Shown one piece after another: positions 50,001 to 59,000 of a stretch of 64,000 nt of DNA (the stretch's first letter is position 1; each line of letters starts with the position of its first letter). The notes under the pieces are model-generated. The model saw nothing but the letters and a program-made list of their open reading frames with translations, searched no databases and was not told the origin of the DNA. Origin of the DNA: Dendrobates tinctorius (Eukaryota); the NCBI RefSeq assembly GCF_039654945.1, contig NW_027361696.1, forward strand, positions 18,290,001-18,354,000. Direction: 5' to 3'. The translations under genes and the position numbers were made by a program.

Positions 50001-53000
50001 ATCGCCCACATTCTTGTCTCGGCTGATTATTGGGTGTACACCCTCCTAGATCCTCGCTACCGGGACAGCGTACAAAGGCTCATACCAACGTTGAACCGGG
50101 AGCGTAAACTGCGGGAGTATGAAGAGTCACTGGTGCAGTCCATAATGTTTTCCATTCCACCCGACAGCATTGTTGCTAGTGCTTTACAAAGCAGCTCTGT
50201 GCATCGAGGCAGTGGAGGAAACCCTGCACAAAGAGGGAGCAGAGGCAGCGCCGCAGCACAAGGCAAGACCACTATGGCCCAAATGTGGCAAAGTTTTGTG
50301 TGTCCACCACAATTGTCTACACCATCAGCGACGCCTCGAGTCAGCAGGAGGCAACACTTCCGTCAGATGGTGTCAGACTACATGTCTTGCCCTGTCACTG
50401 TACTCCCAGATGGCTCTTCCCCCTTCAAGTTTTGGGTCTCTAAGCTGGATACATGGCCAGAGCTTAGCCAGTATGCATTGGAGGTGCTGGCTTGCCCTGC
50501 TGCCAGTGTATTATCGGAACGCGTCTTTAGTGCCGCAGGTGGTGTACTAACAGACCGTCGCACGCGACTATCTTCCGATAATGTTGACCGGCTGACTTTT
50601 CTGAAAATGAACAAGGCCTGGATCTCCAAAGACTTTGCCATTCCTCTTACAGACTAAATTAGTGGTTGGCAACTGTATCCAGGTCTGCTGGTGTGTTCAT
50701 TTTTCTACCACCTGAACTACAATCCCTGTGCTTCAACACAGCCAGTTGTCGCTCAGATGTGTCGTCTGCACAGAGAAACACACTAGCTCCTGTGTTAGTG
50801 GGGTTCAGTAACGCCAGCTGATCCCCTGCTGTGTGGACGGCAAAGTCACCAGCTCCATCAACATTCAAACCACTACTGATTTTTAACCGTGCCCAACTTA
50901 GGTCTCTGGCTCCACTGTCTCTACTATTTCCCCTGGCCTCCAACCCCGCCATCTACATCTCTGAAGTGGCGTCAGCACAATCTACACTTGTTCCTGTGTT
51001 CCTGTGGCTCAGTCCCATCAGTTTATCCCCTGATGTGTGTCCAGCAAGGTCTCCTGCTCTGTCCACATTCCCATAACCAGTAGTGGGAATGAGGACAGAG
51101 CTGGCGAACTTGCCGGACAAACATCAGGGGATCAACTGACGGGACTGAGCACCAGTAACACAGGAACAAGTGTCGATTGTGCTGACGCGACTTCAGAGAT
51201 GTAGCTGGCGGGGTTGGAGGCCAGGGTAAATAGTAGAGACAGTGGAGCCAGAGGCCTAAGTGGAGCATGGTTAGAATCAGTAGTAGTCAACAACCTCCAT
51301 AAAAACCGCTGCCCATTGGCCTCTGCATGCGGCATGCGTAATCCTGGGCTCCAACAGCGTCAGTTGGTGTTCAGAAGTGTCGTCTCCACAGAGCCAAACA
51401 CATTCGTTCAAGTGTTAGTGGGTTTCAGCACTGCCAGCTGTTCCCCTGCTGTGGAGATGGCAAGTCTCCTGCTGCCTACACCAGCCAAAATCCAGTAGGC
51501 CCCAGCCTGCTCCACGCCTGATCCTGGGCTCCAACAGCGTCAGTTGGTGTTCAGAAGTGTCGTCTCCACAGAGCCAAACACATTCGTTCAAGTGTTAGTG
51601 GGGTTCAGCACTGCCAGCTGTTCCCCTGCTGTGGAGATGGCAAGTCTACTGCTGCCTTCACCTGCCAAAAGCAACAGGCCCCAGCCTGCTCCTCGCCTAA
51701 TCCTGGGCTCCAACAGCGTCAGTTGGTGTTCAGAAGTGTCGTCTCCACAGAGCCAAACACATTCGTTCAAGTGTTAGTGGGGTTCAGCACTGCCAGCTGT
51801 TCCCCTGCTGTGGAGATGGCAAGTCTCCTGCTGCCTACACCAGCCAAAATCCAGTAGGCCCCAGCCTGCTCCACGCCTGATCCTGGGCTCCAACAGCGTC
51901 AGTTGGTGTTCAGAAGTGTCATCTCCACAGAGCCAAACACATTCGTTCAAGTGTTAGTGGGGTTCAGCACTGCCAGCTGTTCCCCTGCTGTGGAGATGGC
52001 AAGTCTACTGCTGCCTTCACCTGCCAAAAGCAACAGGCCCCAGCCTGCTCCTCGCCTAATCCTGGGCTCCAACAGCGTCAGTTGGTGTTCAGAAGTGTCG
52101 TCTCCACAGAGCCAAACACATTCGTTCAAGTGTTAGTGGGGTTCAGCACTGCCAGCTGTTCCCCTGCTGTGGAGATGGCAAGTCTCCTGCTGCCTACACA
52201 GTCCTACTACTACTGATTTTTAACCGTGCTCCACTTAGGCCTGTGGCTTCACTGATTTTCGTATTTCCCCTGTCCTCCAACCCCGCCAGTTACAGCTCCG
52301 AAGTGGCGTCTGCACAAACTAGTTATGGGAATGTGGACAGAGCAGGCGGCATTGCCGGACACACATCAGGGGATTAACTGACCGGACTGAACACCTGGAA
52401 CACAGGAACAAGTGTGGATTGTGCAGACGCCACTTCGGAGCTATAACTGGCGGGGTTGGAGGACAGGGGAAATACGAAAATCAGTGAAGCCACAGGCCTA
52501 AGTGGAGCATGGTTAAAATTAGTAGAAGTCTACAACCGATCTTAAAATTTCTTCAATGCAGCCTCAGCCTGCTCCGTGCTTGTCCCTGGGCTTCAACACA
52601 GCCAGTTGTAGCTCGGAAGTGCTGTCCACACGGAAAGAGACACTTGCTCCCGTGTCTCAGTGGGGTTCAGTAACGTCAGCTGTTCCCCTGCTGTGTGGAT
52701 GGCAGTCTCTCCTGCTGTCTCTGCATTCCAAAGACAGTAGGCCTCTGCCTACACCCTCCTATTTCCTGGGCTTCAACACAGCCAGTTGTAGCTCGGAAGT
52801 GCCGTCCACACGGAAAGAGATACTTGCTCCCGTGTCTCAGTGGGGTTCAGTAACGTCAGCTGATCCCCTGCTGTGTGGATGGCAGTCTCTCCTGCTGTCA
52901 CCACATTCCAAATACAGTAGGCCTCAGCCTACACCCTCCTATTTCCTGGGCTTCAACACAGCCAGTTGTAGCTCGGAAGTGCCGTCCACACGGAAAGAGA

Positions 53001-56000: not shown

Positions 56001-59000
56001 CTGGTCCTCGGTAGTGCCATTGGCTCTTGTTCCTTCTGCTGCCCCTCCGGGTGCCAGTACCATCAGCTGGTTCAAGAGGACAAAGAACAGGAAGACAACC
56101 ACCAAGATGCAGAACAACAAGAGAGAGAAGACAAAGAAGCATAAAAAAACCAAGCAGAAGAACAGTAAGCATAAGATTAATACTCTGAGCAAATGATATT
56201 ATCTTATTTATAAGCAGAAGAAGACTAAGCAGTGTATGGGGGTGAGTCCGTTCCTCCTCGTGGTGCCCCTGGAAAAGGCCTGCTGCTGCAGGCCAAACTG
56301 AACGCGGACAAATCCTGTTGTAAATCTTTTGTGACAGGCAGAACGGAAGGTGTAAACTTCTAACTTTTCTAGATAACAACTACAGGAATGCCTGACACAA
56401 ACAAGAATATGATGAAGAAGAATAGGAAGAAGATGAAGAAGTTGAATATGTAGAATAATAATTGTTGAATAAGAAGAATATGAAGAATGTAAGAAAAGGA
56501 AGAAGAAGAATGTAAAAAAAGGAAGTAGAAGAATTTAAAAAAAGGAAGAAGAAGAAGAAGAATGTAAAAAAAGGAATAAGAAGAAGAATGTAAAAAAAGG
56601 AAGTAGAAGAATGTAAAAAAAGGAAGAAGAAGAAGAAGAAGAATGTAAAAAAAGGAATAAGAAGAAGAAGGTAAAAAAAGGAAGAAGAATAAGAAAGAAG
56701 AAGAAAGAAGAAAGAAGAAGAAGACATACATGTCTGGCAAAATATAAATAAGGCTAACATAGTCAATATCTTTGTAACTCCTAACGTCTTTAAAAAAAAA
56801 GTTTAATTCCTGCTATTCCATTTGATTGGGCTAAACCTCTATGGCTTTAATGTCTCCTCCACCTCCCACAATACATTCTACATTATTCTTAGTTGTTTTT
56901 CTTCATGTAGAATTAACCTACAAGGAAAGAAAGGGTTTTTTTTAATTCCGATATTTTGGCCCCATTGACTTGCATTGGTTCCCGGTATCGGAATCGGCGA
57001 TACCGATACTTTTTTTTAAGATCGGCCGATCCATTCCGATCCGATATTTTCAAGTATCGGCTGGTATCGCTCAACTCTAATATTTGCTGATCAGGATGAT
57101 TGGGTCTCAATTTTGCCCTTGCCCGAATTCGCGCTGAACAATAGAGCTAGTTCTGCCACTTTGATGTCACCCTTTTTCTGTAATTTTGGGTTTCATCCTC
57201 AATTCTCTTCAGGGCAAGTGGAATCTTCGTCCTGCTCAGGTGTGGACACTGTGGTTGAGAGAATGCAGCAGATATGGGACCAAGTGGTGGATAAGTTGTC
57301 ACTCTCTCAGGAAAAGGCCCAGCGATTTTCCAACCGGCATAGGACCATTGGTCCCCGGTTTAAAGTGGGTGATATGGTTTGGTTGTCGTCTAAGAATATT
57401 CCTATGAAGGTTGCATCTCCAAAATTTAAGCCAAGATTTATTGGACCTTATAAGATTTTGGAGATTCTTAATCCTGTTTCTTTTCGATCGGCTCTTCCAG
57501 TTACGTTCAAGATCCATAACGTATTTCACAAATCACTGTTGAAGAGGTTTGTTGAGCCAGTAGTTCCTATGGCAGCACCTCCTGACCCTGTATTGGTTAA
57601 AGGCAATGTGGAATATGAGGTAGAGAAAATATTGGATTCTCGTTTGGTTAGACAGAGACTCCAGTACTTGGTCAAATGGAAGGGTTATGGCCAGGAGGAT
57701 AATTCTTGGGTCTCTGCCTCTGATATTCATGCCAATAGATTGGTTTGTGCTTTTCACCGGGCCCATCCTGATCGGCCTGGTGGCGTGGATGAGGGTTCGG
57801 TGACCCCTCCTCAAGGGGGGGTACTGTTGTGAACTCATTTTCTGGTCTACCAGTTGTGAGTTCTCCTTCCTGGCTCCCTCTGGTGGTAACAGGAGGTAGT
57901 GAGGTTGATTTAATTAGTAGAGATCTGCCACCTGATGATGAGGATAACGATTGGATTTCTGGAATCTCAGACTGGATTTAAGACAGCCGACGCCCTATTC
58001 TGGTGCTGGTGATTCCTTCTGGCTTTTCAGGTCTTGGTTTTCAGCTCTGTTCCAGTCATTTTAAGCTAAGTGTTTCTGCTAATGTTCACACTTGATTTTG
58101 CTGGTCTATTCAGCTTTTTGTGTGGTCAGCCAGCCCTGGCTGGGGCTGTGCTGAATTTCCAATCTTATGTATCTGTATTTGCCAATTTGCTTTTTGTCCC
58201 TTATTAGATTGGCCTCTTTTTTGGCTCTGTCTCAGAATATTTCAGAGTGCTGATATAGTGGGAGAAGTCTAGTGACTTCAGGGTTAATTTTGTTATCAGA
58301 AGTGTTGGACATTATTTTTGTAGGGTTTTTTGGGCAGATTGCAGACGGTGTCTTTCCTTTCCTGTCCTTTCTAGTTAGTTTGGGCCCCATCGTTTGCGCA
58401 GCCTATTTTCCTGCCTGTGTTTGTGTTTTCATCTTGTTTCACAGTCAATACATGTGTGGGGGCTGTCTATTCCTTTGGGGTCTGCTCTGGGGCAGTTAGT
58501 TTTCCCCTTTTCTTGCTTTAGGCTTATTTAGTCCTCCGGCTGTGACGAGGCGTCTAGATTCATTGTAGGAACGCTCCACGGCTGCTGCTGGTTATGTGGT
58601 TAGGATCAGGGGTCTGCAATCTGCATAGTTACCAAACTCTCTGGTTTTCTGTGACTTAGCTTGTTTAGCTTTCCTCCTCGGCGACTCATTCATAACAATA
58701 CCCCTTGCATCCTGACATGAGTGCACCCCCTGCATCCTGACATGAGTGCACCCCCTGCATCCTGACATGAGTGCACCCCCTACATCCTGAAATGCGTGCA
58801 CCCCCTACATCCTGACATGCATGCACCCCCTACAATCCCTATTCTCTTGCCCGCCTTGCATACCCCAGAATCAGATCGGCTACTTGTCAAACTGAAATGA
58901 AGTCGACCAATGCACCAGATAAACAAGCTGCTTAGTAACGATCACTAGTACCTCCCTCATGACCTGTCTGCATGCCCCGCACGGAGTTATAAATTCGTCT

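Follow-up and report, generated by a model that had tools for sequence, protein, structure and literature searches.

The common view of DNA transposons is that two ends and a transposase suffice, and internal arrays are usually dismissed as junk cargo. Among hAT elements, the subterminal transposase-binding repeats of the Ac/Ds type (AAACGG) lie within a few hundred bp of the ends and in both orientations, and the long inverted repeats inside Tol2 of medaka lie in an intron and are related to Angel MITEs. At the RNA level, simple retroviruses and IAP retrotransposons have constitutive or RNA transport elements, which are structured, in some cases repeated internally, and sit in the 3' part of unspliced transcripts; they work better in multiple copies and are naturally present in one or two. 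Newt satellite 2 is a transcribed amphibian satellite with a self-cleaving hammerhead ribozyme. Tandem repeats borne by transposable elements are known in Xenopus Xmix and Xstir, X. tropicalis miDNA4, clam DTC84 and the Drosophila Tetris foldback element (PMC9659126, PMC12628747, PMC3879986), and Angel hairpins are also mentioned (PMC12628747).

We describe here a hAT element in a window of 64,000 nucleotides from the frog Dendrobates tinctorius (contig NW_027361696.1), in which a tail of 5.4 kb lies 3' of the transposase gene and holds about 20 tandem copies of a 120-base module. The predicted one-strand fold of this module is common to two frog species and points to a candidate undescribed RNA element.

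The hAT element and its tail

The element occupies 11,287 bp on the + strand (45793–57079), as defined by both termini and by end-to-end alignment of elements from Ranitomeya variabilis. Cross-species comparison used two R. variabilis loci, L001 and L004, of which L001 aligns to both ends (45793–45904 with 11700–11804, and 55843–57079 with 22533–23673). As is usual in the hAT superfamily, there is an 8-bp target-site duplication, ATATCTGC at 45785–45792 and ATATTTGC at 57080–57087 (7/8 bases the same), and short terminal inverted repeats, with TAGTGTTGAGC beginning at 45793 and a 3' terminus ...GCTCAACTCTA ending at 57079 (10/11 bases complementary). The host site is a Ty3/gypsy integrase that is split into halves, and the flanks rejoin as one integrase. 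A single uninterrupted ORF of 1109 aa (47328–50657, + strand) encodes a transposase with the BED zinc finger (PF02892, E 1.5e-8) and C-terminal dimerisation domain (PF05699, E 4.6e-14) of hAT proteins; residues 400–1109 are 80% identical to one R. variabilis protein (P0001), and identity to another (P0008) is 73% across 873 aa. The carrier is large and apparently autonomous, and its tail arrays lie past the stop codon and ahead of the 3' end.

The motif CCGATA/TATCGG is clustered at both ends on the + strand map, with eight copies next to the 5' terminal repeat (45793–45900) and five next to the 3' terminal repeat (56940–57079). A 5' internal array (46251–46965, +; 255 bp x 2.7 by TRF) has a hairpin of about 85 nt in each unit, and a purine-rich, AAG-type stretch ahead of the 3' end (56073–56760, +) aligns to the 3' region of L001. 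None of the 13 end motifs has a counterpart in 50658–56072, and the tail core described below is missing from the ends. This absence of CCGATA from the tail argues against a BED or transposase version of the protein-binding platform that the earlier note had listed, which is left without support.

TRF and an inverted-repeat search recovered the order of parts proposed previously: first a unit and a palindrome, then two 180-bp arrays that are each followed by a palindrome, and last a unit and the 66/265-bp array. The first module (u0; 50724–50843, +; covariance-model match of 128.8 bits) starts 66 nt past the stop codon, as at all three loci, and is contiguous with the transposase alignment at both R. 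variabilis loci. It is followed by a palindrome (HP1, 50881–51276) with 193-nt arms that match at 90% around a 10-nt spacer, each arm consisting of one linker and one module at 63–71% identity to the repeat unit and scoring 29 and 42 bits with the module model. Array A (51339–52199, +) has a period of 179 and a higher-order period of 359 (4.8 copies, 95–99% matches), with five modules starting at 51342, 51522, 51701, 51881 and 52060. In the second palindrome (HP2, 52209–52525) the right arm is full and the left lacks its inner ~100 nt, and arms of 100 nt at 98% are detected at 52218–52518. Array B (52585–54694, +; period 180, 11.7 copies, 97% matches) yields twelve modules at 116–129 bits. The third palindrome (HP3, 54702–55011), again with a full right arm and an internally deleted left arm, is perfect over 41-nt arms with zero spacer at 54766–54847. 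Beyond it lie module u5 (55070–55189, +; 128.3 bits, sense z -3.11), a degenerate module (55248–55361, +; 57 bits) with about 200 nt of weakly related sequence up to 55570, and array C (55571–56071, +; period 66/265). The latter is built of 66-nt half-modules, each a core hairpin plus spacer, in a four-monomer higher-order repeat (265 bp x 1.9); pairs of monomers score 35–40 bits, and the array is kept at the same position in L001 at 81% identity.

From 50720 to 56072 every segment aligns to the 180-bp unit in direct or inverted orientation, and on these alignments all parts of the tail, palindrome arms included, are shown to share descent from one repeat unit. We considered whether the three hairpins are nested foreign MITE or foldback insertions and rejected this, as their arms are linker plus module of the tail's own repeat family; judged by their arms, the long palindromes are inverted duplications rather than insertions.

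The tail is not unique to one copy; L001 and L004 also carry modules. The covariance model finds 20 full modules in the window, all on the + strand, 20 in L004 and six in L001, and homology thus shows the module to be inherited in a second frog species. TRF and the model counts show copies arranged head to tail, their number differing between element copies, as in satellite-like arrays. Across the window and R. variabilis, a single module occurs at array periods of 142, 166 (156/166), 180 and 197 bp while its own length stays at 116–123 nt; this spread of periods argues against a nucleosome ruler, and the nucleosome-period element suggested earlier is unlikely. L004 carries in addition a 261-bp x 4.7 array upstream of the ORF (8557–9778). 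The R. variabilis copies have long palindromes directly after the first module (479-nt arms, 95%) that are not homologous to those of the window, and this similarity of place without homology suggests recurrent gain.

Core motif and module fold

The core GGGYTYCARYAMNGYCAGYTG (≤1 mismatch) has 37 matches in the window, all on the + strand and all within 50728–56003; none were found in 100 shuffles, an expectation of 0. That all array types share one core holds as first described, and the matches are confined to the tail. The further claim that the core is kept while spacers diverge holds for the linker between modules, which is free, and fails for the spacers within modules, which are stems and conserved. 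Mean pairwise identity along the unit is 0.83–0.86 in the cores, equally high just 3' of core 2, and 0.71 overall; it drops to 0.48 only in the linker of 30–77 nt between units. The conserved entity is not a 22-bp core but a module of about 120 nt, of which the cores are the two apical stem-loops.

In the predicted fold the module begins with an extended hairpin (6 bp plus 4 bp with a 7-nt loop) that contains core 1. A 14-bp stem comes next and closes a three-way junction, from which project a short ACAC/GUGU hairpin and another extended hairpin, that of core 2. Between neighbouring modules lie free linkers, rich in pyrimidines and 26–77 nt long. When folded singly, all 16 distinct direct modules from the window, L001 and L004 give the identical MFE architecture. 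Sense folds have z of -3.1 to -5.7, with only 0–1 of 200 shuffles as good, compared with -1.7 to +0.85 for the antisense of the same modules and -0.9 to +0.75 for transposase coding controls.

Substitutions in the stems were examined in several ways. Stem cells pair in 96.3% of 590 cases versus 32–52% with slid partners, a control that is inflated by circularity, as the consensus structure was derived from those very sequences. Using instead the structure predicted from one window module and applying it to nine R. variabilis modules, one-sided changes were kept in 58 cases and broken in 17, and two-sided changes were kept in 20 and broken in three. The inner stem of the core hairpin is paired in 135/136 cells across three paralogous classes, with A-U, G-C and C-G at one position; this count includes a difference between the two species at one position of the 66-nt array, CCGGC/GCTGG versus CCACC/GGTGG. 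Six pairs are altered on both sides and 16 have G·U variants, albeit the number six is reached by 49/500 shuffles and only about ten independent lineages from two species are represented; the RNAalifold covariation term is small (-0.87).

The non-Watson-Crick stem cells are asymmetric, 76 being G·U and 4 A·C. Counted by pair position, G·U occurs at 16 and A·C at 3 (one-sided binomial about 0.002). In the long palindromes the G·U to A·C counts are 3:3, 1:1, 2:5 and 2:4 and transversions predominate, so a regional mutation bias does not explain the G·U excess in the modules. By these comparisons the constraint to pair is shown to act on the sense strand only. The module thus has the general properties of a structured RNA, namely a fold common to diverged copies, stability above shuffles and strand specificity.

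Searches of Rfam 15, ribozymes and miRNAs included, gave no module match and nothing at or above a gathering threshold; the perfect 82-nt palindrome has sub-threshold matches to generic miRNA-precursor models only. Ribozyme models (hammerhead, twister, HDV-like and others) gave no match at E ≤ 1. A tRNA-derived SINE was rejected, there being no cloverleaf and no spaced A and B boxes: ARAGORN finds no tRNA, and the sequences that resemble the boxes, AGTGG and GGTTC, lie next to each other instead of 30–60 nt apart.

Possible explanations of the tail

The earlier note preferred a functional array over neutral expansion. That preference is borne out in part, in that the element survives differing periods and a second species with pairing kept on one strand, and the comparisons support a tail that is more than random expansion of arbitrary sequence. 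Of the options it listed, a processed or functional RNA is favoured over neutral drift by the conserved element and its pairing-preserving changes on one strand.

We tentatively favour, at somewhat less than even chances, a tail that provides many copies of a structured RNA acting in cis within the 3'UTR of the transposase. The tail is the internal non-coding 3' part of a family of large hATs in dendrobatid frogs, and its modules all share the direction of the transposase gene. Module number would shift, and the higher-order repeats arise, through unequal exchange and replication slippage, and fold-back (inverted) duplication of whole units would generate the long palindromes. We infer that the intronless transposase mRNA extends through the tail, which would form a long 3'UTR, and that the modules act there in cis as RNA. 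A candidate role is protein binding that helps the unspliced message to be exported, stabilised or translated, much as transport elements do for retroviruses and IAP; module copy number would then be a tunable dose. On the + strand of the window, AATAAA and ATTAAA are both absent between 48763 and 59849, a gap that is not significant given how little unique sequence it contains; in L004 no such signal precedes 19027, and in L001 several lie close to the 3' end. Rather doubtful is a more specific version in which the module represents a new class of structured cis-acting RNA, carried some 20 times over by the 3'UTR of an intronless mRNA for a vertebrate DNA transposase. It would recruit a host RNA-binding protein (or the RG-rich transposase itself) to control export, stability, translation or cis-preference, with the dose set by array length; alternatively, it would be cut into unit-length non-coding RNAs.

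A somewhat unlikely explanation is that the tail is functionless for element and host, a hitch-hiking satellite-like cargo amplified from a hairpin-rich ancestor by slippage, unequal exchange and fold-back repair. Pairing might then persist through preferential amplification of units that form hairpins, or through homogenisation of the arrays from a small number of founders. Tandem arrays within DNA transposons and MITEs are well documented, frogs included (PMC9659126, PMC12628747). Internal arrays are common in hATs of the D. tinctorius genome, flanking the transposase on both sides in other families; period, copy number and orientation vary freely among copies, and contig joints genome-wide skip the arrays and show many deletion and length variants. 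Hairpin-rich repeats may also be a DNA-level habit of the hAT family, as the 5' array forms strong hairpins on both strands (z -6.98 sense, -4.78 antisense). When core and remainder were compared at matched, presumably orthologous positions between the window and R. variabilis, the core of the 66-bp array was no better conserved than the spacers (82.1% vs 81.7%), and that of the first unit only weakly so (88% vs 72–75%, p about 0.05). With DNA identity of about 82–84% in the transposase region, orthologous conservation of the tail is not clearly above the element background, and the number of two-sided pairs, as noted, is within reach of shuffling. However, neutral amplification does not predict strand-specific pairing, with G·U far outnumbering A·C in the stems while adjacent palindromes decay symmetrically, or negative z on the sense strand only, and it leaves unexplained a 37-pair architecture kept across arrays that are 20–30% diverged and differ in period.

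Very unlikely, in our view, is small-RNA self-regulation, in which read-through of the palindromes would give dsRNA hairpins diced to siRNAs, or the tail would feed piRNAs, so that the arrays and hence the transposase transcript are targeted and copy number limited. The three palindromes of module sequence (arms of 41–193 nt, 90–100% complementary), the apparently recurrent gain of others in R. variabilis and the sub-threshold precursor matches would suit such a source, but most mismatches in the three are transversions and G·U and A·C are equally frequent, the pattern expected of unconstrained DNA inverted repeats, two of the three have lost much of one arm, and the conserved fold of the direct modules is left unexplained. 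Most improbable is a DNA-level platform, in which the cores (CAGCTG/CAGTTG, with dyad symmetry) are duplex sites for transposase, host factor or repressor and the array a transposition enhancer, chromatin organiser or silencer target: GYCAGYTG, which makes up the core's 3' half, does vary least (G24, T26 and G27 invariant), CAGCTG is a palindromic E-box-type sequence and 37–48 copies are evenly spaced, but core and end-clustered motif exclude one another, the array period varies, and a duplex site has no reason to accept G·T yet not A·C and needs no conserved 14-bp long-range stem and three-way junction around it.

If the tail is indeed a structured RNA in the 3'UTR, it would be a rare case of a eukaryotic cut-and-paste transposon that is regulated post-transcriptionally in cis. 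It would also be an RNA tag that occurs naturally in many copies, and possibly a factor in the success of hATs in giant poison-frog genomes. If not, it offers a clean case of one 120-nt unit giving rise, within a mobile element, to arrays that differ in period, to higher-order repeats and to long palindromes, and a warning that a G·U bias in pairing may have no function behind it. Either way, this is cargo under an apparent strand-specific, multi-helix folding constraint that has outlasted array turnover and is common to two frog species.

Comparison with known systems

The closest parallels are the DNA transposons and MITEs that carry repeats, which likewise have arrays of variable copy number and higher-order repeats inside a class II element, are spread by transposition and often have monomers with palindromes (PMC9659126, PMC12628747, PMC3879986). 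The frog element differs in its large, apparently autonomous carrier, in the position of its arrays after the stop codon and in a 120-nt monomer with a multi-helix fold conserved on one strand, of which those three reviews describe no example. Tol2 is similar as an autonomous vertebrate hAT with long internal inverted repeats, although these are intronic and not tied to arrays of structured modules. The Ac/Ds repeats share with the tail a short motif repeated many times within a hAT, but the frog element has its own end motif, CCGATA, of a different sequence, and the cores of the tail lie internally, occupy a single strand and belong to a larger module. Newt satellite 2 also consists of amphibian tandem units folding to a three-way-junction RNA, predicted in the case of the frog module, whose junction strands, unlike those of the hammerhead, are without the CUGAUGA and GAAA cores. 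The proposed likeness to the transport elements is one of function, by analogy: the frog module has no sequence or Rfam similarity to them, but may work like them, in twenty copies rather than one or two.

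The hAT insertion and the layout of its tail

In the window, which contains 0 N, a Ty3/gypsy pol gene is broken at 45792 and resumes at 57080, and since its reading frame goes on past the insert, the hAT arrived later than the gene that it interrupts. The Ty3/gypsy sequence at 43849-45792 and 57080-57840 (reverse transcriptase, 43849-44484; RNase H and integrase zinc finger, 44442-45491) places the hAT within the integrase. The inserted element begins at 45793 with TAGTGTTGAGC, which occurs once in the window, and finishes at 57079 with the complement of TAGAGTTGAGC; the flanking sequences are ATATCTGC and ATATTTGC. 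Clusters of CCGATA/TATCGG are present at both ends (eight copies at 45807-45889 and five at 56948-57060), and an uninterrupted ORF of 1109 codons (47328-50657) encodes a transposase with a BED finger and a hAT dimerisation domain. From these ends, flanks, clusters and ORF the insert is an 11,287-bp hAT. Its transposase is closest to 'ZBED4/6-like' protein models from dendrobatid frogs, with one from Ranitomeya variabilis at the top (80% identical), and an exact-protein look-up in public assemblies gave no match.

A 24-bp tandem repeat (3.5 copies, 47364-47448) within the ORF produces an expanded RG-rich N-terminus with GRGRGDSA repeats, of which the R. variabilis protein P0008 has the short form only. 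Tracts of RG/RGG typically act as RNA-binding or Tudor-binding motifs. Hairpin-rich arrays make up the non-coding parts on either side of the ORF. The one lying 5' of it (46251-46965) has a 255-bp period with a strong hairpin of ∼85 nt per unit (z -6.98 sense, -4.78 antisense), and the R. variabilis locus L004 carries a 261-bp array (4.7 copies) upstream of its ORF. An imperfect AAG-rich simple repeat of ∼320 bp (56403-56724), with sub-periods of 23-81 bp, separates the tail from the 3' subterminal region and keeps its position in a second R. variabilis locus, L001.

The tail, the non-coding stretch 3' of the transposase ORF (50658-56072), has the succession of units, palindromes and arrays that the earlier note described. 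A single unit, u0 (50724-50843), comes first. Palindrome HP1, with arms of 193 nt at 90%, separates it from array A, which has 4.8 copies of a 179-bp period and a higher-order period of 359 bp, and palindrome HP2 lies between array A and array B (11.7 copies of 180 bp). Array B is followed by palindrome HP3, whose 41-nt arms are perfect, then by unit u5, one degenerate unit and array C, which has a 66-bp period and a 265-bp higher-order one. The core said to be common to these arrays is likewise present, a degenerate version matching 37 times, on the + strand and in the tail only, with 0 matches in shuffles. Sensitive self-comparison shows all segments of 50720-56072, palindrome arms included, to be homologous to the 180-bp unit, which makes the tail a single repeat family and not an alternation of unrelated pieces. 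An entire 'linker plus unit', copied in head-to-head orientation, makes up each palindrome arm, and parts of the left arms of HP2 and HP3 have since been lost. Monomers of array C (66 nt) are similar to the unit's first half, with core 1 and the CTCGG..AGTGCC after it, and pairs of them match the module model described below at 35-40 bits.

Array B also contains ORFs of 341 and 329 aa, which we treat as a by-product of its 180-nt (60-codon) period; their sole Pfam match is below threshold. An open frame of 120 aa through the array, translated and searched against a protein collection, gave no match.

A common fold of the repeat module

The repeat unit contains a module of ∼120 nt in which core 1 and core 2 form the tips of two extended hairpins. 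The inner 4-bp stem of the core is paired in 135 of 136 cells over 34 distinct instances, which cover two species and three paralogous classes; one of its positions occurs as G-C, A-U and C-G, and an outer stem of 4-6 bp is found in every class. Altogether 89% of the core stem cells pair, compared to 28-51% with slid partners. At the matching position of the 66-nt array, Dendrobates tinctorius has CCGGC/GCTGG where R. variabilis has CCACC/GGTGG.

When 16 distinct direct units (seven from the window and nine from L001 and L004) were folded singly, all 16 reached one common minimum-energy fold. The core-1 hairpin is followed by a 14-bp stem joining the 'spacer' after core 1 to the sequence after core 2, and within this stem a three-way junction bears a short ACAC/GUGU hairpin and the core-2 hairpin. 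Relative to dinucleotide shuffles, the sense strands give z of -3.1 to -5.7, their reverse complements -1.7 to +0.85, and the control transposase coding sequence -0.9 to +0.75. In the alignment of the 16 sequences, 96.3% of 590 stem cells are paired, with two-sided changes at six pairs and G·U variants at 16 pairs. Among the non-Watson-Crick stem cells there are 76 G·U versus four A·C; the long palindromes of the same elements, used as a control for mutation bias, vary mostly by transversions with G·U and A·C about equal (3:3, 1:1, 2:5, 2:4), so that the strand asymmetry belongs to the module itself. When the structure of one window module was scored in the R. variabilis modules, 58 one-sided changes kept it and 17 broke it; of the two-sided changes, 20 kept it and three broke it. 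The module is thus under pairing constraint on the sense strand.

A first RNAalifold run with the palindrome arms in the alignment gave a weak consensus, and per-sequence folding ruled out that these arms share the module fold. With a covariance model built from the 16-sequence alignment, the window yields 20 full modules, every one on the + strand, L004 yields 20 and L001 six (two of them in an inverted segment); palindrome arms and array C dimers give weaker matches. Within four arrays summed, 12 variants fall in 74 paired columns and 21 in 48 unpaired columns, although because the loops carry CpG this avoidance of stems is not counted as evidence. An Rfam E-value search of the tail assigned the module to no family and gave no ribozyme match, ARAGORN found no tRNA in the tail, and a metagenome scan with the best-conserved 33-mer had no match.

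Conservation and turnover in related elements

It had been proposed that the core is kept while the spacers diverge. Across ten independent representatives, mean pairwise identity is 0.83-0.86 for the two cores, 0.71 for the unit overall and 0.48 for the inter-unit linker, and the stretch just 3' of core 2 (TCCCCTGCTGTG) equals or exceeds the cores. Compared to position-matched, presumably orthologous R. variabilis sequence, array C is 82.1% identical in cores and 81.7% in spacers, and u0 is 88% identical in cores and 72-75% in the remainder (p 0.045-0.07). The proposal therefore holds for the inter-unit linker only. In the 166-bp array of L004 (14625-17815), eighteen modules have an identical model score (125.2 bits) and variation is in the linker only, whose lengths alternate (core spacing 87/97 nt) to give 322- and 488-bp higher-order repeats.

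L001 and L004 belong to the same hAT sub-family, with DNA identity of ∼82-84% across the transposase region. Both have u0 directly after the stop codon and carry long palindromes, whose arms reach 479 nt in L004. Their arrays repeat the same module at other spacings, with a period of 197 bp, an inverted one of 142 bp and one of 166 bp that has the 322/488 higher orders. Array C, a purine-rich stretch and the 3' end are common to L001 and the window. A conserved hairpin sequence was considered and rejected, as the R. variabilis palindromes are non-homologous to those of the window and only the palindrome habit is shared. The tail descends from one family, amplified in tandem and inverted, and inherited across species; the module and general layout are inherited, while each lineage rebuilds its own arrays and palindromes. 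Contigs from public runs show the tail sequences to be very abundant in D. tinctorius, with diverged forms in a second species, and many joints skip arrays, representing length variants among copies. Four frog hATs at a greater distance (51-57% aa; from D. tinctorius, Phyllobates terribilis, R. variabilis and Anomaloglossus) have no credible core or module, and the tail is thus specific to the sub-family and not to frog hATs generally.

Two further features of these loci were observed. In the 22.5-kb P. terribilis locus the hAT transposase sequence occurs three times (∼2200, 10900 and 19500) at ∼8.6-kb spacing, which suggests tandem duplication of the whole element or of a segment with the transposase. 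At L001 (10001-16781), the public gene model for protein P0001, which overlaps KRAB zinc-finger genes, runs a KRAB domain and the hAT transposase together; a transposon inside a KZNF cluster has probably given rise to an annotation chimera here.

Possible roles of the tail

The first module starts 66 nt past the stop codon, every module is co-oriented with the transposase ORF, and no canonical poly(A) signal is present on the ORF strand before the end of the arrays in either the window or L004; for these reasons we infer that the folding strand is the transposase mRNA strand. The missing signal is weak evidence, there being little unique sequence in this part, and L001 has several canonical signals near its 3' end. 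Together, the sense-strand constraint, orientation, position and poly(A) pattern lead us to read the tail, tentatively, as a long 3'UTR built of a multicopy structured RNA element. Each module would be a candidate protein-binding site, most plausibly aiding export, stability or translation of the intronless message, and unequal exchange would let array size drift. The pairing constraint is seen in modules of two species; a functional array or RNA, as suggested earlier, is a hypothesis.

That the tail is a neutral, hitch-hiking satellite we regard as somewhat less likely; this accounts best for the turnover of arrays, for the wealth of hairpins in the 5' array and for the weakness of the orthologous signal, but leaves the G·U asymmetry without explanation. 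It is improbable that the palindromes serve as a source of small RNAs for self-silencing. Least probable is the suggested duplex-DNA platform on which proteins bind the cores, since the motif at the element ends differs (CCGATA/TATCGG), the array period is not conserved, and tolerance of G·T but not A·C is unexpected of a duplex site.

Transposons that carry arrays are a familiar finding, in frogs as elsewhere (PMC9659126, PMC12628747, PMC3879986), and the poison-frog genome papers cover hAT abundance only and not internal structure. A conserved, strand-specific, multi-helix module serving as the unit of an array appears to be undescribed, as does the presence of such an array 3' of the ORF in an autonomous hAT from a vertebrate. 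For the proposed 3'UTR role in export, stability or translation of an intronless message, the analogy would be to the retroviral and IAP transport elements.
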